Source: Dicyema japonicum (taxonomy: Eukaryota; Animalia; Dicyemida). Taken from it: a DNA stretch of 64,000 bases. The notes under the pieces were generated by a model, which was given only the letters and a program-made list of their open reading frames with translations, ran no database searches and had not been told where the DNA came from. Below, in pieces: positions 16,090 to 51,720 of the stretch. The stretch spans positions 11,080 through 75,079 of the forward strand of contig RDEW01000021.1 in assembly GCA_011109175.1 (NCBI GenBank). The letters are read 5' to 3'. The translations under genes were made by a program, and so were the position numbers. The number at the start of each line of letters is the position of its first letter. Position 1 is the first letter of the stretch.

Positions 16090-18620
16090 TGGGCGAGTCA
16101 GGTAGTCCTGCAGGTTCGTAGCAGGCTATCTCGAATGCCCTGGAATGGATGGCCATACTTGGCGGAGCTCTGCAGTGGCAGATTCAGTACTGCTATATCT
16201 GTGAGTGAACTCAAGAAGATGGCTGTAGGCAAAGAGGGTACTGGTCTAAAGGGGCGGGGACCAGGTGACCACAACTGTCAAAGAGAGCACGAGCACCAGA
16301 GCTGTGATACGTTGCAGCTCAAGCATGTTTATGAGGTCTTTGCACGGAATCTCGCTGCAGCGGCAGATGTCCCACTTGAGAACCGTAGATTTACCTGCAA
16401 GATTCCTCATTGTAAGGTTAACGGTGGAGTGTTAACCTGCATCAATAAGGCTATGGCTTATGCGGTGGAGTCGACCGATAACCTGCATGCCAACCCTGTA
16501 TAAACTGATGACCAAATTGTGGCTAATGAGGTCAGGAGCTTTGTAGAAGCAAATGGGATTCTCTCCGAGAATCAGTTGGGTACTGTGCGAAATTGTCAGG
16601 GGGCAAAAGAGCAGGCTTTGATCAACAAATGCCTTTCTGTGTTTCACGGAAACTCACTTTTGTCTATGTGGGTGGATGTGAAGAAGGCTTACGATTCAGT
16701 TGATCATTCTTACCTTGTCGAGTGCCTACACAGTCTGTGTATGCCTGTGTGGTTCATCAGTTTTGTAGTGGCTGTGATGAATAGGTGGAGTATTCATCTG
16801 AATTATAATAGGCACTGGATAGGTAAGGTAAAACTCAAGAGGGGGATCCTTCAGGGAGATAGCATGTCTCCGCTACTCTTTGTTCTCTGTTTGGAGCCAT
16901 TGAGTCGCCGCCTCAATGACCGGTTTGAGCAAATACCAGTTCATTGTGAAGGGGTTTGTTTCAGTACAAATCACCTTCTTTTTATCGATGACTGAAGATG
17001 TATGCTCGAACAGCCGAGGAGCTCTACTCCATGGGGGTCTGTGCCAGGGAATTCTTTGAGAGTATAGGGCTAGATTTGAATTATTCAAAGTCTGCGACTA
17101 ACACGCAAGTATGTAGCGAGTTAGTAAGAGTCCTAGAGGAACACGAAGGATATAAGTATCTGGGTGTTACCGAATCTCCAAAGTCCCTTATAATGCCTGA
17201 GACAAAGCGACAAATTACTGAAGGCATCCGTAAAAGAGCAGCGTTATTGTGTAAGACGTCTCTAAATGCAAGGAATTTGTTCCTAGCATTAAATGAGTAT
17301 GCTGTCTCGCTGCTAAACTACTACATAGGTGTTGTGGAGTTTGAGCCCAAAGAGTATGATGAGATGGATGTTATGATCCGTGGAGTACTCAGAGAGAACC
17401 ATGTCCATGTGTTGGCAGCCAATAAGGAGAGACTATATTTACCCCGTGATAAATTCGGCCGTGGACTGTGTGGAGTAGTCCAACTAAGTGAGCGTATCCT
17501 AATGCGAATGCACGACACCCTGATAGCTGGGTCAAGTGTGTCTGCTAGGAAGCACGCCATAATAACGACCGAGAAAACACGGGCAACCCACCTAGGCACT
17601 ATCAGACCTTTTTTGTCTGCTAAGTATGGTGTTGATGATGGTGGGCTAGTAAATGTGAAGGCGTTGATCGAATTACAATATAATAATTTGATGGAAAAGA
17701 TCAACTTAAAAAGCCTTCATAAGGTCCTCTTCAGAGCATTGGACAACCCACATGTCGACCTTAAGTCGTCGACAATATGGCTAAAATACGGTGACAACTC
17801 ACCTCGATCGGAGGCGTTGTACACGTATATGCAAGACCGCAATATTTTTTGGGGTCGATCAACAAATACATGTCCCCACTGTAAGTCAAGGAGCATGTCG
17901 GTTGATCATTTAGCCACTCGATGTGGATCCATGCTCTGCCACGACTATGTGTGGAGGCACAACGAGGTAGTAAGGAGTCTTCATCTTCTACTATGCAATA
18001 AGTATGGTATTCGCCACACCAGAAAGTTGCGGACTCATAAGGTGCAATCTGTAGTAGAGAACACCAGGGTCCAAATTAAGGTAGACAGTGTTATCCGTAC
18101 CTCGGTGCTAGTCAAGCACAATAAACCGGACATTGTGGTACACGATAAGGAGTCTGGCCAAGTCCTTATCATAGAGGTTGGCATCACGTCTCAAGACCGT
18201 TTGCAGACTGTGGAGGTGGAGAAAAAAAGGAAGTATGACTTTCTTGCAAACGAGATGGGGCAGATGCTTGGTTGCAAGGTCCTCGTTATTCCTATAGTAA
18301 TGACGTGGGAAGGAATTGCAACAAAGTACCACAAGGGTTATCTGAAGCAGTTGGGGGTAGATAGGAAGCTCCAGGCCTATCTACAGTCCACTGTGTTAAA
18401 GCGGACCCTAGAGAGCTTGACACTGGAGTATAGGAGGCAGAGCCCTGAGATGCCATATGGGCAGAGGGTTCAATTTGACAATGCGCTCTCGGAGTTGTTT
18501 CAGCAACCAGAATCGAACCTGCCTGAGGAGGCTGGCGAACAGGCAGGCGAGGAAGGTTGTTGATTAAATATATTAACTTTTTATTTTTTATTGTTATTTT
18601 TAAATAAAAAATTAATTCAA
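16090..18620 (+). mobile_element. Near-intact R4/Dong-like RLE non-LTR retrotransposon (RT + CCHC + PD-(D/E)xK endonuclease)
   Basis: RPITCMPTLYK, KKAYDSVDH, GILQGDSMSPLLF, FIDD, YKYLG, CPHC..DHLATRC, RHNEVV, KPDIV, IIEVG, EKKRKY. From 16480 onward only two -1 frameshifts (near 16515 and 16992) break the frame. Confidence 0.93.
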
Positions 18621-19919: not shown

Positions 19920-21840
19920 AATTAAATTATTAACCCCGGCTTCGCCAGGAAGTGGGAAGCCGGCGACCATCAGAGAGCGTGCAGTCCGGACAGGCCGCTC
20001 CCAGAGATCCTCGACTTTTGCATCCGGTGGTCCAGGGCAGGGAAAAAGGTCCGAACTACTCTGCCAGCCAGAAAAGGGTGGTGTCCACATCGTAGGCGAG
20101 CCAGTCCGATTCTGATCTTCCTCGGGAGCGATTTTTCCGTTGGACTGATATCAGGGGGGAAGCGCTCCAAGACTTTGTTATATTGAAGTGTCCTAATGAC
20201 CCGTGTTGAGATGAAATCATGGATTCGGCGGGTCCAAGTTGAGTCTTCTTGAGGGGGGTGATCTTCGACAAGGCTCTTTGTAGGTCAAAGAGGGTCCTGC
20301 GTATGTATCTGCGGTTATTGTTACTTAGCAGAGCGTGAACTGGGTGATTCGGGTCGAACGACTGCCGTAGGAATTGTAAATTACGCATTTCCAGGTGGTC
20401 ATAGAGCGGGAGGATTTTCGACTCCCAATGTAAATGGTCGGTGGGGGTTGACTTTAAGCAGCCAGTTATTATTCTCAGCGCCGAGTTTTGCACTTTCTGC
20501 AGTTCTTGAGAAAGGGACAAGGAGATTGAGGGGGCCCAACTTGGTGAGGCGTAGTTGAGTGTAGTCCTGATGAACTGTTTGTAGAGAAGAGTTAAGTTTT
20601 CTTTTTGCTGACCGTTTGAGTGGCCAGCTACTGCCCGTAATATGTTAAGTTTCCGCTTGGCTTTTGTCATTACTTCCTCCACTTGTCTGTTGAAACAGAG
20701 TGAAGGATCGAAGACAACTCCAAGGATCTTCGGGTATTTATTTAAGGGGAGTGGTTCGTCTCCCAACGAGAGTGTGGGGTTTAGGTTGAATTGTCTTCGA
20801 TCGGTTGTGAACAGGGTAGCTGATGACTTCGAGGTGGAAACACTCATCCAGTTTAAGTTCATCCAGTCGGATAGCAAGTTCAGGTGGTACTGCACTTTTT
20901 CGGTGGCCAGTCGAACATCGCCACTCCTGGATGCGATTACTAGATCATCGGCATATGTCAATAGTAACGTATTTTGGGTTGTTGGGATGTCTTTGACGTA
21001 AAGGTTGAAAAGTGAGGGTGAAAGGACTGATCCCTGGGGAACACCGTTTGGTAGGAGTCGATATCTTGATAGATTTGAATATAGACACGTATGACCCAGT
21101 CTTCCCGAGAGGAAATTTGTGAGCCATGACTTCCATACAGAGGGAATATTTGAAGAATAGATCTTGTTGCAGAGGACCACACGGGAGATTCTGTCGAAAG
21201 CTTTAGTTAGGTCAATAGAGGCCAAGACAGTTCGTTCCGGGGGTTTGCAGTTGTTGAAACCGTTGGAGATGTATTGGGTTAGTGTCAGTAAGTGCGTGGT
21301 GGTCGAGTGTAAAGGACGGAAACCATGTTGTGAGTCGGAGAGGTCGAGGTAGGGGGTGATTTCGTTAAGAATGATCCTTTCGAGGATTTTTGAGACAACA
21401 GATGTTAAGGAAATTGGCCTGAACGAAGAGGGCAAGGAGGAGGCTTTGTTGTTCTTGAGTATTGGGATAATGTTCGACTTCTTCTATAACATCGGGATGA
21501 AACACCTGTTGATAGAGAATTCGTAGATATCTTTAAGTGCCAAGAGCCCGTTTGGACCGAGGTGCTTTAGGTGGAATATGCTGATCCGATCGGGTCCCGT
21601 GGCTGGTGAGTTTCTTGAGTTTGTAATGAGGTTTTGAACATGACTTATTGATACTTCGAATCGTGCCTTTGTTACCCTTGGGGGTTTAGTAATATGAGGT
21701 CGATTTTCTTTATTCATTGGAATATGACTCATTTTGCTATGGTGAGTCATCAAGTCATTTGCCTGGCAGTGGAAATCTTTTGTTTGGTTGTCCTTTCCAA
21801 GTCTACCTCCATGGGTTGTGCTCTTTTCCGTATGAAACAT
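19920..21840 (-). mobile_element. 5'-truncated LINE with open RT domain (ORF 20056-21435, 459 aa)
   Basis: SFRPISLTS, QHGFRP, IDLTKAFD, GVPQGSVLSP, TYADD, PKILGV, RIITGC; 3' RIGLARLRCGHH; ATGPDRI in 21484-21840. Confidence 0.95.
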
Positions 21841-41399: not shown

Positions 41400-42200
41400 A
41401 AGATCACCGGATTAGAAAAAGTTTAAAGTTAACTACTAACTAAGTGATCCCGGTTTTCCGGGTTCTGGCTCTCGTTCGGGGTCCTCGAAGATCCAACAGA
41501 ATTGGTAAAAACAGGGACGGTCTCATTCTCCATAGATTTCCCCCATTTTCTAGATAGTCAGATATAGAGAGTGAAAGCGGACAGCCGGTTTTCATTGCCC
41601 ACTGTAGAAGATGACTTCACTCTCCACCTTAGGTGTTCTTTAACATTCAATACGTTATCCAGTTTTCTTATTTATTATTTTGTGCGGCTTCTAATTTTTG
41701 AGACGACGATTCAGAAATCATCGAGCTCCAGGAGGGACATGCGTATTCGATTACTAGCAGTTTGTATTGTCTATAAATTTTCTGTGGTAAGAAGGTGTTG
41801 TGCCCGATTGGTGATCGGGACAAAATTTTCAATATGTTGGTCCTCATCCTGACCTTTGTAATAACGTCATTGACGTTTTGGCCGAATGTCAAAAGAGTAT
41901 CCAACTTTAATCCCAGTATTGTTGGAAAGTTATTCATAGGAATTTCATATCCAAACAATTTGATTTTGTGAGAGTATAATGATCTATATGTGGAGAAAAT
42001 TGTTATAAACGACTTTCCTGTAGAAACTTCCAGTCGATTTGATATGAGCCAATGTTCCAACATACAACTTTGAAGTTTTATCTCTGCCTTCTCATAGTTA
42101 GAATCTCTCGTCGAAAGAACAATGTCATCTGCGTATGAGAGTATCAATGTATCGGGATCGTCATTGGTGTACAGGTTGAAGAGCACTACCACGCTCCTTA
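41400..42200 (-). mobile_element. LINE RT 3' fragment (GGGATCAC-end family)
   Basis: LFNLY, SYADD, PTILGLKLD, IEYACPSW (ORF 41668-42192); terminal gggatcacttagttag at 41444-41451. Confidence 0.85.
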
Positions 42201-42459: not shown

Positions 42460-44100
42460 GTTGAAAAAAACTTTATATAGTGTGAAATTCACTCGACTTT
42501 TGACTTTTCCATTGAGAGACTCAAGTCACGGGATTTACATCACCAGAGAATTTCTTCCAAAAATCCACGTAATCTTCTTTCAGACACCACCTAAATAAAC
42601 ACGTTAGTACTAGAATTCCCTGGTGCCGGGAAATCTCTTATAAATGTATTAAAGAGCAGAGGACTCAAGACTGAGGCTTGTGGCACTACCTTCTTCATTG
42701 TAATCTGTTCAGCAGTCAATCCTCCACATCCCACAAATGATCTTCTCCCGCCAGAAGATTCCTTAATCAGTCGAGTTTCGACTAGTTGACAAAACAGTGC
42801 GTCATGTCAGACACTACGAAAGCCAAAGCAGACGACACTAAGATGATATTTGAAGATCCTGGCCTTCTCAATCTCAGAGTTCAAGATGAAAAAACAATCT
42901 CCACAGATCTTCCTCCTTTCCAGGTTTTGGGATCATCTGAATAATGGACTCCATTTTTATTGACTTCTTTAAATAAGAAATCTATAGTCTTCTGAGTAAC
43001 TCGTATTCTTCTCTTTAGAAATTCTAGGTCCACATAATCCCGTCTTAACTTTGTCCGAAGGCGAGTTCGTTCTCTGCTTGATATGGTAGGGACAGCAGCT
43101 TTAGGATCTCCAGAGAAAACAGGTTTCGAAAAACAATGTATATTCTCCCCATAGCACTCACAATGTGCTAACATAGTCCACATCACCGGTCAACAACATA
43201 GACGTCGATAAAACATAGATTATCCGTCATGAATGTCCTGTACGACTCCAATTGACATTATTAGTATCAAATTTCATAAAAAACCCCACAATACATGGTC
43301 AATTTTAAATTAACACATAAGACTTGGGGAATATGGTCGCTTCCTGTATCTCTAACTAGGAGTATCCACATGGGCAATAAGAGGTGAAGACACCAGAAAA
43401 ACATTTGCACAAAAATTTTTCATAGCCAATAAAAACTCGGTCAAACCTGGTTAACTCAACATTAGGGGACTGGTAGCTTGGTTCTGGTTCACAACCACTA
43501 CGAAACAAACTATTTGGTAGTTTCTTGGTAAAGGCTGTTCACAACAATAAGTCATATTTATTGATTATGCCTCATTAATTGAATTTGATGTCCTTATTGA
43601 AGAAAATAAATATGATACTCTTGGCTGTCTCTTTTAGTGAAAGCAATCCTGAGTAATGTCTGTTGATATCTCCATAAAATTTATTTAATCCATAAAACTA
43701 ACTAGTTAGCCTAATTTTTGTTGAAATGAAACAAACTAAGCTATTTGGTGGTATTTCGATACTTTATGGACTTTGAAAAATATGACCCTTCCCATCCTGC
43801 TAGGTCATTCCTTGGAAGGTTTCCAGTAAACTTTACTCACTGGACGTCTATTTAGATGTGTTATTAAGTGATGTATCTTCGGCTGCGTCGACCATGGTAA
43901 CCAGACACATTTGGTTGGTTTTCTATTGTTAGCATCATCATATTTACTAACACCGTTCTTAGCAGGTGATCCTCCAAGTTCTTTCAATTTTGGGCTGGTG
44001 GGATTCGTAAACGGATCCTGCGTTTATTCCAGGTTCAGAACTTTGAGTTTCCGATCTCTCATGTGTCTGTCAGCTACCGTATTCTCACCAGGGGGCTTCG
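42460..44100 (-). mobile_element. Degenerate jockey-like LINE related to 7840-11060
   Basis: DTGSDHIP (~43340), linker similar to 9380-9620 (RERTRLRTKLRR..DL), VPQASVLSPLLFN (~42650-42690). Confidence 0.65.
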
Positions 44101-44309
44101 TCATACATAAAGCTATAAAGACACTGTGTGCAATAGAGTTACGTCACTAGCTCATATTCAGACTAACCACGTGGTTGATGTTAAATTAAAAATTAATTCA
44201 TTTTTAAGGTTCTTTTGAATCTTTATCATTTTAATTTATTTAGAATATAATTTAATAATAACTCAAAAATTATATATTTAAAATTTTCCGAATAAAATAA
44301 AATTTTTGA

Positions 44310-44963
44310 ATGGCAAAAGACACAAAGGAACCTAGTTTTTTATTTGCAATTCAATGGGAACCTGGTTTACTGGAAGTATTGGACTGCTAATTTTAAAGGA
44401 CGGTGCAACATTGCCTCCAGGAAACCAATCTAATTCATGGACGATTCATGGTCTTTGGAAGGTAAGACGAGAACACCTTGAAGGAAACAACTTTGACATT
44501 AGTAAACTGGAGCCAATCATTGCCGAACTAAATAAATACTTTTCTACGGCCTACAGGGGTACATCGACTGAAGAATTCTTGTATTTTAAATTCACCCAAC
44601 AGATCACACGAATGGAAAAAACATGGGATTCATTTCAGGGACATTCTCGGAGGAGAGCTTGGATACTTCAAAAAGACATTGGATCTCCTCTATGAAATAG
44701 GAATGGACGAGTAAGGTGTTTTATGAGGTTTAGAATTTTAAAAAAACATAATATCATTCCTTCTTCTGATAAGTTATTCTCAGTATTAGTTGCTATAATT
44801 TTAGCATGCGGATATTCAAGCAGCCATAGTGGAGGAGAAGGGTATAGAAGTCGATATTCGAAACAAGGGCAATAATCTAAGTCAAATTTATATCCATTTG
44901 GATAAAGATTTCAATTTTATTAATTACTGGCGAGACTACCGTTATCTCCCGTTTGAGCATTAA
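44310..44963 (+). CDS. RNASET2: Ribonuclease T2 family protein, 187 aa, cysteine-free, no signal peptide
   Basis: Introns 44376-44398, 44581-44602, 44711-44733, 44783-44804 give a 564-nt open frame with FAIQW, CAS I WTIHGLW and CAS II FLSHEWKKHG. Confidence 0.9.
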
Positions 44964-46819
44964 CTCATTTCTGTCTCGTTTGGTTATTAACATGGTTTTT
45001 CTCATTTTATTTGCATAATCGATTTATTCGATTTTAATTCTACGTGCCTAACATATTAGTGGTTTTTGACTATATTCACTGAAATAATGTGAAAGTACAC
45101 AAATGTTAAATCTTCATCAATCCAAAAAAACAGTGGACAGCACTGTTGTCTCTTGGTAAGGATGACTATTTATTCGACTTCCAAGATACCAAAAATGCTG
45201 TTAGGCTGTTCAATAAACTTCATGAGGCATGGTACTGCTGTTAGGCTGTTCAATTAACTTCATGAGAATTTTCAATTTGGTCAGTTTAGTTTATTTTCAA
45301 GTGGCAATTTCAATTTCCTCAAGTAGACTTGGCCTAGTGGTTAATCGGTCGGGGAGTTGAACCTAGCTGTCATCTCCCCAAAGTTAATATTGTCTCTTTC
45401 CTTTCGGATACATCATTGGATACGCAAATCTTCAGATGCGAGGAAGCATTGAGTACATCAATGTCACAATTAGGATCCCTCCTTCCCAAATTTGATGACT
45501 ATGGATAAGTCTGTATTGAGGCGGAACAATTATTAATTCCCAATCTTCTTAAGTGTACTTTTTGCTTGAAATCGATAATTAATGTAGGTTAAATATGCTA
45601 ATAATGTGGTTTTCAGTTTGACCAACCTAAAGGACAATGAACTTCACAGGAGTTATCTTTATTCGGAAACAGAAACAAAGAATTTAATGACAAATCATGC
45701 TTCAAGACAATGGGCATTGTTAACGGTGGTTATGAAAACACCCAGGAGCTGTGTGAACGATTCCCATTCGCTAGACACTACCAAACAAACAAAACACAGT
45801 GGACATTTTCTGTCTCTGAATGAGTCTTTGAAGAACACTGTCTTGTGAATCTTCAAATTTTAATATTAAAAAAACAACTTTTTCGTGGTTAAATGGTCTC
45901 TTCGACATAACTTTAATAAGTTCGTCCACCGATAAGAAGTTAGCAGTCATAACTGTCTCTGAATTAGTCTCTTCATATAAGAACACTGTCTTGTGAACTA
46001 ATTTAAGGTTTTTCAATCTTCAGAAAAGCTGTATTACGAACCCAACCCCATTATTTACCTGTTTACTTCAACCAACACCTTTTAGGAAGTCTTTAGTGGT
46101 TTGACCTATGCGAGCGAGCTCTCACATGAGTGTGAGTAACTTTGCACCCTAGAGGCTCCGAATAAATAGTACCGGCAGAATACTATCCTTTTTAAATTCC
46201 TCTTAGGTTTTGAACTTCTTGATGCAATTTTTGTTATAGGGTATTCACTAAACATTCCGTTTATTCTCCGTTTATCCCTAACGGTATTCACTAAACTTAT
46301 AAACTCTTTTCGGTCAACTGAGTCTTTCTTTCATTGCCTTCAACTCATTGCCACATGAATAACTCAAAATATATCAACAAGTGTTCTTTCATGGATCCCT
46401 GACATTCATACATAGTTCGAGGCAGGATTATACGCTTATTTGGTCATTAATTTGTGTTGCACTGGCATACAGGTAATCGGCCTCAGTAGGTGATTTAGGG
46501 TATCTATATAGGGTTACATTACATGGTCTCATTGTATAACCATTTGGGAATAACTCGTGAGTTGGGAGGTAGTCTCTTAGAATAGTACTCAAAGGTTCAT
46601 GGGAGAACTTGATATTTTTTGACTGGGAATATATTTCTTGGTTACTCTAATTATCCTTTAGTTACTCTGATAATATTGGGAATAGTCCCCTCACGAGTAA
46701 TGGCTATCTCCCACATGATGGCAATCTGATTCAAGTTCGACACAGTTTTTCATCCCCCTGTGCAATCGTTGATAGAAGAGTCCATGATTAAATTATACGT
46801 GCAATTTACCGTCTTAACC

Positions 46820-48900
46820 AATAACTAATATTCAGGTGATCCCGGCATCTCTCAATAATCGGGCCATTTTTTCTCGATGCTCCGACCGTGATCCCACACA
46901 TTTTCTATACGGACGGAGGTCTTTTTCCCTTCCTCTTCTGAAATTGCCACCAGTTTCCTCTATGATAGACTCGAGTGCTCTGGGGGCAATTTTTTTATCT
47001 GTATATTTTTCCAGTAATTTTTTGCTCTTGACTGGATCTCTTGAATTTTTGTTAGGTTCGTTGCCGACAGGTTAGATCCCCACGCAGCAAATGCATAGCC
47101 TATTGTTGGCTCGACATACTGCTCGTAGAGGGTCCCGATACCTGGCAGATAAATTCCTCCACAGTTCCAAAGGAAAACTTTCACAAAATTGATCTTCTTT
47201 GCACAGGTTGATGTGATGGATTCCACATGGGCTGAAAAGCAGAGGAAAGTATCAAAAGTTACTCCCAGTATCTTCTGCGATTTCTTTTGTGGTATTGGCA
47301 CTCCATTTAACGTGACATCAATTGTTTGCGTTCCCATCTTTCTATTCTTAGTAAATAGAGTGACTGCTGACTTTCCGGAACATGAATTTAATCGATTTTT
47401 GCACAACCATCCAAATATGTTATTTAGTATTCCTTGTAGTCTTTACTTAGCATGTTCGACATTTACGTCTCTAGATGCGACAACTATGTCATCGGGATAA
47501 GAAAGTAGCATGACATTATTATTCATTGGTACGGGGAGATCACTCAAAAACAAATTAAAAAGGATTGGTGACAGAGGAGATCCTTGGGGTACACCATTGG
47601 GTAATGATCCCGATCTGGAACTCTTGTTTCCGAAGGACACTTTCCCTCGGCGTCCACTTACGAAATTTGCTAACCATAACTTTAATGTTTCATCAATTTT
47701 TGTCAAAAATATTTTTCTTATGAGGATCTTTCTTGGGACAGAGTCGAAAGCTTTTTGAATGGCGATCGTACATATGACCGATTTTTTTTGTTTTGGCTTG
47801 TTCTTGTGTCCTTCAGTTATAAACTTCATTAATGTTGTTAGGAAGGAGGTTGTTGATAATCCTTCCTTGAAGCCATGTTGGAATGTAGGTTGTGGGAGAG
47901 AAGGGCGAATAAGTTTTAGGACCAGTTTCTCCAGGATCCTCGACAAAACACATATAAGGGAAACTGGTCTGTAAGAGTCGGGATCGTTCTTCAGTCTTCC
48001 CGGTTTCAATATTGGACAAATTTTATGAATAGGCTTCGGTACAAAACGTGGCTCGCAATTCAGCTTCATTATCATTGAATGGTGGTCACTCCGGAGGTCA
48101 TAACGGACCGTCCAATTAATGATCGGGGAAAGACGAGGCGAGCAGATTGATAAGTCCGGAGATGTCACCATGTCCTTCGTGTTGTATGGTCCTAGTGTTC
48201 TTTTTCCGGTTGTTGATGATTATTAAGTTTTGCATTTGGGATAATAGCAGGTCTCTCCTGTTATCAGCGACCTGGTAGCGGAACCAAGAAGGGTGCTTTG
48301 CATTCAGGTTTCCACATAAAAGCAAGTTCTCCAGTTTGTCCAAGGTAGATAGGTCAAAGAAGAAATATTTCTTGCAGGAAGCAGGAGGAGGAACATAAAC
48401 ATTCCCAATTTCAATTTTTCCAATGGAAGTTATAACAGAGATTCCAATTATCTCCGTGTTCGAGTCTTCTATTAAGCTCTTGTAAGGAGAAAGGTTCTCG
48501 AGGTATTTTATTCCTTTTCTCGCAAGAGTCAGTAGACCCCCTCCTTGGCCAGATGGGCGGTCGGATCTTACTGTGTTGTATCCGTTAAAGAGAGGAGTAG
48601 GAATGTTATTTGAAAGCTTCGTTTCCTGAAGAAGGCAGATGTCTCTGTTCCTCTCCAAGAATAAGAAAAGTTCGGCAATCTTTCCTCTGCTTTGGATTGT
48701 TAACTTCTTTGGGCCTGGAGTTTGTTCCACATCTGCTGAGGTCAACAGTCTCAATCGATAGAATGTTCCAACAGTGAGAGAATGCCGTCCAGTAAGAAGT
48801 CCTCTAGTTGGTAGAGAGCAAATGGTTCTTTTTAGATATAGTTTAGGACTATATCCGACGCCACCAGAAACGGTGAACCACATGACGCACTCTAAATAAG
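46820..48900 (-). mobile_element. APE-RT LINE with large internal deletion
   Basis: DICLLQETKL, GNVYVPP, CGNLNAKH, SDHH joined directly to PILKPG; FQHGFK, GVPQGSPLSP, SYPDD; 3' gggatcac at 46836-46843. Confidence 0.9.
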
Positions 48901-50148: not shown

Positions 50149-51720
50149 TTAGGTCGACGAAAGGTTCACTTCTGATAGCTCATGATGCAAGTAAGCCAAG
50201 GCATTTGAAGATTCCATCACGTGGATTCCGTTCATAGCTCTGATTTTAATTACTTGCAAATCATTAATGAGATTTATAAACATTGTCCTCGCCTGGAATC
50301 TGCTGTAGTTTGACTGCAGATACAAAGATAGGAGATATGTGTAGTGTTCCTGTGTTTTTACTACGAGACTCTAAAGGTTAGTCTCCCCCTAACCACGTTG
50401 TTCAAGTCCTCTCTTTCTGGCGAAAATATGGCGATCAAAATAATCAGCTGTAGAGTCTTGAGGTCCCCAGCTGAATGCTCGGTCAACTCCTTAGTAGCAT
50501 TACACTGCTGGATTAGCTGCTCTATTCCATAGATCGACTCCTCGTGGTAGAAAATGGGGGGAATTGTTGATTCATTTTCATTAACCTCGTGGACATCCGA
50601 CACAATGCTCATTCTGATAGTCAAAAGTACGATTATTGACGACTAAATAAACGGAAACCCTTACTTTTAGTAAAGTTAGTCTGTCCTCCTGACACAAATT
50701 CCGGTACTCTTCGAAATGTCCTATGAAGTGTGCAAATTGGCGAGTTTTTGTGGATACATTGTCCGTATTAGTGAAGACCCTACCATTGCTTTTTGACAAA
50801 AAACCTGAAAAAGATATAATTGATGTTTTCTATCATCTGGTTGGCTTCCTCTGAGAGGCACATTTTGGGGGTTGTGTCGAATATACCTCCATTATTCGAA
50901 ATGGCTGGGAGTTGAGGAGAAAATTTAATGATTAAGTGACTTGCAAAGTCCTCTGATGACTTGAGATAGTCCCCTTCGAATTCTTCAGTAAACACGAAAT
51001 CATAGAATCCACTGTCTTTGTGTATTTTCGCCACGGGATAGCAATGAGAATAAACGGGTAATCCAGTTGGGGGATGAAAGTAGGCAGAAGACATGTCCAA
51101 AGAGAAGCTTCCCTTATGCATTTGGGGAGGAACTCCTGTTGGAAATGAATGATGTCTTTGAATGGCGGATATCATTGAATGATTGTTAGGAATGTGGTAA
51201 ATTTGGTCGTTGACCTTTCCGTAGTTATAAATGTAGGAAGGTGGAGTTCTTTCGAATCTACTAACTCGAGGACTGAAAATATTAGATCCGCCCTGAGAGC
51301 TCTCGTCGTTCTTTTCCCGTGAGGTTTTTCGTTTGTGCTCGATTTTTACGCGTCTTTTCTGCAGCTGATCTTCAGCTACGAACATTAGAGAATAAATATT
51401 ACTGAGAATCCACTGTTTCTTCATCCCCACGTTTATGCATTTGTTCAGTCGACAAGCTGGACAGAACTTCCGAGTAAATGGAGTGAGAGCACATTCCCCC
51501 GTGAAGGCACAACGCATATTCTCAAATAAGACATCAATTACCTTCTTTCTGAGAGCGTTTCTTCTGAAAAATGCCTTGCAAGACTCGCACGTGACTGCAT
51601 TGAAGTTATATCCAAGCGCCTTATCCCCACAAATTGCACAGATGTACTGAAAGTGATGTCCCTTTGGTTTACTTCTGCGCTTGTGGTGTTCCGTTTTTTC
51701 GTTAAGTGAAATCCCCTAAA
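50149..51720 (-). CDS. Nuclear receptor, NR1J (HR96/DAF-12/NHR-8)-like; 5' end not resolved
   Basis: CAICGDKALGYNFNAVTCESCKAFFRRNA (P-box CESCKA); second finger CAFTGEC..RKFCPACRLNKC..VGMKKQWIL; LBD motifs EDRLTLLK and IAIFSPER; introns 51521-51541, 51376-51402 and others. Confidence 0.9.

Follow-up and report, generated by a model that had tools for sequence, protein, structure and literature searches.

RNases of the T2 family are among the most conserved secretory/lysosomal ribonucleases. [quoted passage not shown] All completely sequenced genomes of animals yielded at least one T2 gene, and signal peptides are the norm for the family (PMC2720953). Loss of the catalytic histidines, with structural cysteines and signal peptide retained, characterizes divergent lineage-specific T2 paralogues such as Tetrahymena Rnt2 D-F, CalsepRRP, and OsRNS4 (PMC3248902). 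The plant S-like RNases LE and MC1 are also disulfide-bonded, and are extracellular or vacuolar. In some cases a T2 active site meets cytosolic RNA, as occurs with the cytoplasmic RNase I* of E. coli. Yeast Rny1 does so when released from the vacuole (cited in PMC3248902). Both nonetheless have signal peptides and cysteines, are made for secretion or for the periplasm, and reach the cytosol secondarily.

Dicyema japonicum is a parasite of the octopus kidney, an animal of about 30 cells. Its genome, assembled into 377 scaffolds totalling 67.5 Mb, has a GC content of 36.7%, consists of repeats to 49%, and contains introns averaging 38 bp in length (PMC6736024), while a 2026 survey describes introns of 20-27 bp with splice signals consisting only of 'GTa' and 'AG' (PMC13644364). 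Ribonucleases are unmentioned in the supplement of the genome paper (PMC6736024), and a literature search on Cys-free or cytosolic T2 enzymes retrieved nothing specific. A window of 64,000 nucleotides of this genome (contig RDEW01000021.1) was here analysed, and positions given without a locus name refer to it.

The gene found at 44310-44963 on the forward strand is, judging by its sequence, a highly divergent RNase T2 homologue and an intact protein-coding gene. It coincides with animal RNASET2 in Pfam family, CAS I and CAS II, collinearity of the ~190-residue domain, and multi-exon organization, whereas its model contains no Cys and no signal peptide. Relative to RNases LE and MC1 the catalytic residues correspond one to one, but KHGIH takes the place of KHGTC and the Cys of TNCPG is replaced. 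The comparison with Rnt2 D-F, CalsepRRP, and OsRNS4 is one of opposites, since the dicyemid family keeps the catalytic set and loses the cysteines. Unlike Rny1 and RNase I*, the window gene appears to encode a non-secretory, disulfide-free form.

Gene Structure

In the unspliced sequence of 44310-44963, RNase T2-like coding pieces are spread over two reading frames. Upon removal of four GTA..AG micro-introns of 22-23 nt, they join into a single 564-nt CDS for a product of 187 residues, none of which is Cys. This product begins MAKDTKEPSF, its N-terminus being MAKDTKEPSFLFAIQW, and its ATG is immediately preceded by an in-frame TGA at 44307-44309. The first-pass annotation, made from the letters of the window, had proposed a Cys-free protein of this length with four introns and a stop directly before the ATG, and the rebuilt gene model bears it out; the motifs that it quoted (QWEPGLL, HGLW within WTIHGLW, HEWKKHG, KHGIH, and QIYIH) and the N-terminus are all present.

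Exon 1 (44310-44375, 22 codons) encodes the ATG, a hydrophilic N-terminus, and the first T2 strand with QWEP, the Cys usually found after QWP being missing; its ATG is at a position equivalent to that of the paralogue L001 described below. Intron 1 (44376-44398, 23 nt, GTA..AG, phase 0) contains a stop codon and shares position and phase with a 28-nt intron of the paralogues L001-L003. Exon 2 (44399-44580), which carries CAS I, is followed by intron 2 (44581-44602, 22 nt, GTA..AG, phase 2), coincident in position and phase with the 27-nt intron that precedes (W)EHEW in L001-L003. Exon 3 (44603-44710), with CAS II, is separated by intron 3 (44711-44733, 23 nt, GTAAGG..TTTAG, phase 2, position conserved in L001-L003) from exon 4 (44734-44782), whose product ILKKHNIIPSSDKLFS covers the T2 'gI.P' segment and aligns with KLSDSGIIPSRNITYS of L001. 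After intron 4 (44783-44804, 22 nt, GTA..AG, phase 0, again at a position conserved in L001-L003), exon 5 (44805-44963) encodes the C-terminal third of the protein and ends at the stop TAA at 44961-44963. In searches within the own genome, exon 5 pairs with the last exons of both L001 and L003 (E 0.007-0.01), and the C-terminal residue is equivalent.

Introns of 20-27 nt being normal in D. japonicum, the 22-23-nt introns of this gene represent the species norm and not a sign of decay. DNA contigs from four sequencing runs of one (pooled) sample show zero indels over 44382-45226. The four were the only runs retrieved in a search for RNA data, and all proved to be contigs of genomic DNA, without splice joints within the gene. 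The lack of any indel in the four runs indicates that the changes of frame are due to real introns. Frameshifts arising from assembly errors are ruled out on the same grounds.

Homology and Catalytic Residues

The products of exons 2 and 3 match Pfam PF00445 collinearly, at profile positions 29-87 (E 3.6e-5) and 90-122 (E 0.007), respectively. Taken singly, both exons score below the gathering cut-off of 26 bits (24.4 and 16.9 bits), while in the own-genome scan the match with its in-frame neighbours reaches 26.1 bits and the paralogues 41-50 bits. Among solved structures, the best matches are to the plant RNases LE (exon 3, E 2.5e-4) and MC1 (exon 2, E 0.004), similarity to human RNASET2 being weak (E 0.2-0.35 per exon). 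In the alignment to RNase MC1, WTIHGLW at 44438-44458 corresponds to CAS I (xTIHGLWP) and contains the catalytic His39. In that to RNase LE, SHEWKKHG at 44604-44627 falls on SHEWEKHG, the CAS II motif HEWxKHG being at 44607-44627 and providing His85, Glu86, Lys89, and His90. Thus, the catalytic set of the window copy is complete, and the earlier description of both motifs as intact is confirmed by Pfam and by the alignments to both plant structures.

The canonical disulfide cysteines are, on the contrary, absent, with no Cys in the window copy and one in L001. RNase LE has KHGTC where the window copy reads KHGIH, and RNase MC1 has TNCPGSPFD opposite EHLEGNNFD, so that the Cys of KHGTC and that of the CAS I-proximal loop are replaced. 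Exon 5 carries QIYIH and FINY at sites that usually hold Cys in plant T2 sequences. Exons 4-5 alone give no T2 match, and a last-exon profile of the window copy and L001 gives none against the PDB, which counts against the reading of the gene as a T2 endoribonuclease. Putative N-glycosylation sequons number two in the window copy (NQS and NLS) against a single one in L001 (NIT), and their positions do not correspond.

A HMMER search with exon 2 against 1.84 billion representative sequences produced nine matches, three of them true T2 proteins confirmed by Pfam (P0001, P0003, and P0004; E 1e-12 to 2e-5). These metagenomic or protist-like proteins have two T2 domains in tandem and are Cys-rich, P0001 and P0003 also showing a signal-like hydrophobic N-terminus; their scores are inflated by the presence of two T2 domains, so they are not considered close relatives. 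The remaining six, to proteins with YWTD/LDL-receptor or InlB B-type repeats, are spurious. Neither a close relative nor a self-match was found among the 1.84 billion representatives, and a word search with region 22-81 of the 119-residue open frame at 44336-44692 yielded no candidate. Such lack of close relatives on record is what would be expected of a family that evolves fast and is specific to its lineage, and it makes a recent bacterial origin by transfer less likely. Horizontal transfer and contamination by host DNA were rejected on account of micro-introns typical of the species at positions shared with the paralogues, together with the absence of a close bacterial match in the exon 2 search. 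A scan of prokaryote genomes for WTIHGLW retrieved one locus on a Streptomyces contig, dismissed because the string arises there by chance, in an alternative frame of DNA rich in GC.

The RNase T2 Family of the Genome

The assembly searched consists of 67,542,437 bases in 377 contigs and covers ~76% of BUSCO genes. A six-frame PF00445 scan of the whole assembly detects only four T2 loci, and own-genome searches using the last exon of the window copy and a Cys-rich T2 domain as queries recover the same loci and nothing further. No conventional Cys-rich T2 was thus found by these scans and searches in the assembly, in line with the initial reading of the window copy, although at ~76% BUSCO coverage this is not proof of its absence from the genome.

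Two of the loci are intact. The window copy bears no lesion over its 187 codons and 8 splice sites, and the second, L001, encodes 181 residues with a single Cys and is 41% identical to it. Both share four introns in position and phase, have equivalent start and end residues, and keep all five catalytic residues, their identity being clustered in WTIHGLW, HEWxKHG, ILGGEL.YF, IIPS, and DFN..NY. In L001-L003 exon 2 is interrupted by a fifth intron, 27 nt long and containing a stop codon, which the window copy lacks precisely and with the frame kept, as is the signature of real introns. The other two loci are decayed. In L003 (G000:C363:55858-56178) exon 1 is disrupted by a TAG and by a shift of frame, and the last exon lacks 1 nt. 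In L002 (G000:C63:28631-28954) the start of exon 1 is lost, the 5' end being replaced, and 1 nt is inserted into a T run of the last exon. As some of these lesions are located in T runs, they could reflect errors of sequencing. The unit duplicated between L001 and L003 extends just 81 nt upstream of the ATG, which speaks against an upstream signal-peptide exon.

At L001:1217-1712 (G000:C363, about 75163-75658), T2 exons 2-3 appear twice in tandem, as a duplication of 248 nt whose halves are joined at a single N. Because it flanks an N, a real duplication of these exons was dismissed; the feature most likely arose during gap closing, from the ends of two allelic contigs that differ at 2 residues.

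Regarding selection, pN and pS between the window copy and L001 are 0.40 and 0.81, respectively, with synonymous sites being saturated. L002 and L003 have diverged from L001 by 6-11%, show pN/pS ratios of 0.6-1.1 that are near neutrality, and carry two or more lesions each; ratios of this size at such divergence indicate that both are decaying. Within the CDS of the window copy there are five variants, four non-synonymous (all conservative) and one synonymous. As this ratio is about neutral and the density of variants is similar to that of the flanks, the signal of present-day constraint is weak. Three of the variants (N52D, N53D, and S57N, at 44486, 44489, and 44502) lie in exon 2 within 17 nt of each other, come from different runs of the one pooled sample, and affect the loop that follows CAS I, in which a Cys is present in other T2s.

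N-Terminus and Subcellular Location

The N-terminus of the window-copy model is hydrophilic, with Asp and Glu, and its 9-residue hydropathy maximum is 0.99. The 150 nt upstream of the ATG are AT-rich, and no GT occurs within 44220-44309. ATG-started exons were searched by brute force over ~2 kb upstream, using AG acceptors at 44319, 44327, and 44335 and also allowing TG acceptors at 44308 and 44312, and no exon joinable through an intron shorter than 171 nt was found in this range. The sole signal-like upstream peptide, MSLLKKINMILLAVSF, at 43588-43636/43652, requires an intron of 656-683 nt, and the DNA there is at raised depth. Hydropathy, the in-frame TGA, and this search thus agree in giving no signal peptide to the window-copy model. 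The first-pass annotation had likewise noted its absence, which holds for the first coding exon, and had named a signal exon spliced near 44319-44335 as what would speak against it; the long-intron peptide is the only such candidate that emerged. The lack of a signal-peptide exon close enough to be joined by a micro-intron makes it plausible that the protein is located in the cytosol or nucleus, in partial support of the retargeting proposed by the first-pass annotation.

L001 differs in having a more hydrophobic N-terminus, MDIVPYVYVLLW (2.28), which in the alignment corresponds to the T2 fold's first strand and for which, from its hydrophobicity, a signal-like role may be conceived. As a control, the cathepsin L-like (papain-family) genes of D. 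japonicum were found to keep their cysteines in QG.CGSC and VDC..GC.GG, indicating that the loss of disulfide Cys is not a trend of the whole genome.

Functional Interpretation

Taking these observations together, we hold it somewhat probable that the locus is a functional spliced gene for a predicted disulfide-free, non-secretory T2 endoribonuclease, the Cys and the signal peptide having been lost before the two intact paralogues split. Its product would probably act inside the cell, and not in lysosomes or outside. The T2 family would have left the oxidising secretory route prior to the divergence of the two intact copies, and the window protein would be made on free ribosomes and fold without disulfides. 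It would be a transferase-type endoribonuclease, proceeding via 2',3'-cyclic phosphates like other T2 enzymes, with single-stranded RNA of the cytosol or nucleus as its putative substrate; alternatively, it may act on RNA met after autophagic delivery. Counting against this proposal, a non-specific cytosolic RNase would need some restraint.

A different outcome would be that the protein is still a secretory or lysosomal T2, translocated by means of a far-upstream signal exon or of an uncleaved hydrophobic first strand, and grown independent of disulfides in a fast-evolving parasite. We consider it unlikely. The signal-like ORF at 43588-43652 can be joined in frame, but only through an intron of about 660 nt, to be compared with a genome mean of 38 nt, that starts in the raised-depth DNA. 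In favour, the N-terminus of L001 has 10 hydrophobic residues in a row and then SFA|E, and a zebrafish T2 isoform is described whose predicted signal overlaps conserved T2 sequence (PMC2720953). However, the N-terminus of the window copy is hydrophilic, with Asp and Glu, and the two intact paralogues agree in the position of the ATG, which stands behind in-frame stops. That this is the only T2 family in the assembly, while animals normally keep one lysosomal T2, also speaks for a secretory enzyme, whereas the cathepsins of the genome, which show no such total loss of disulfide Cys, speak against a secretory protein having shed all of them.

Two further explanations were considered. The locus may be a relic, recently silenced or never expressed, whose frame is open by chance amid transposon debris, as in L002 and L003; we regard this as quite improbable. 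Two of the four family members are indeed broken, the L001 clade evolves near neutrality, the polymorphism of the window copy is 4:1 non-synonymous to synonymous, and the gene sits between LINE fragments. Nonetheless, L002 and L003 gained two or more lesions each at just 6-11% divergence, while the window copy has 187/187 codons and 8/8 splice sites intact with no indel in any run, and its catalytic motifs are identical to those of a paralogue from which its synonymous sites are saturated. Less probable still, and in our opinion very unlikely, is an expressed but non-catalytic or weakly active protein with RNA-binding or regulatory functions, given that T2 activity may be low at neutral pH in the absence of disulfides. 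The lower activity reported for the cytoplasmic form of E. coli RNase I counts in its favour. Moreover, T2 homologues with non-enzymatic roles are described, as Tetrahymena Rnt2 D-F (PMC3248902) and OsRNS4 (PMC12871459). Known inactive T2s, however, lost the catalytic histidines and kept the cysteines (PMC3248902), the reverse of what is observed in both intact dicyemid paralogues.

Beyond the disulfide-free, non-secretory enzyme proposed for the window gene, and as a more tentative suggestion that we hold possible rather than probable, dicyemids may have replaced the secretory/lysosomal RNase T2, otherwise universal among animals, by a disulfide-free enzyme made directly in the cytosol or nucleus, with a new role in cytosolic RNA turnover or RNA fragment production. 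If true, a naturally occurring T2 fold would be able to stay stable and active under reducing conditions. Together with an active site kept under long-term constraint, this would imply that the fold does not need disulfides and that a bulk RNase could be moved into a reducing compartment. Questions would then be raised about how its activity is restrained, how lysosomal RNA is degraded in dicyemids, and whether tRNA or rRNA fragments are produced. A disulfide-free T2 that could be expressed in the bacterial cytosol would, in addition, be a practical reagent.

Genomic Neighbourhood and Other Genes

Fragments of non-LTR retrotransposons (LINEs) with reverse-transcriptase domains flank the T2 gene on the reverse strand, at 20059-21435, 41668-42192, and 46960-48883, and an endonuclease/exonuclease/phosphatase domain is recognized in them at 48119-48883. 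Of the roles suggested by the first-pass annotation, tRNA/rRNA cleavage and defence against retroelements, the one observation in favour is this placement of the gene between LINE fragments, which is unremarkable given that 49% of the genome consists of repeats. At 43000-43950 the depth of the DNA runs is increased 2-15 fold.

Elsewhere in the window, a 245-residue open frame at 50783-51517 on the reverse strand contains a nuclear-receptor C4 zinc finger (PF00105, E 6e-7) and is probably an exon of a nuclear receptor, and a 521-residue open frame at 16998-18563 on the forward strand shows no Pfam family at E <= 0.001. Across the assembly, papain-family (PF00112) protease genes account for 130 exon-level matches at E <= 1e-5, distributed over many contigs and with local clusters on C68, C157, C334, and C57; examples are L009 (C46:102193-105783) and L010 (C334:1531919-1535587). 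Set against a total of only about 5,000 genes predicted for the genome, such abundance looks like a large expansion of cathepsin L-like proteases.
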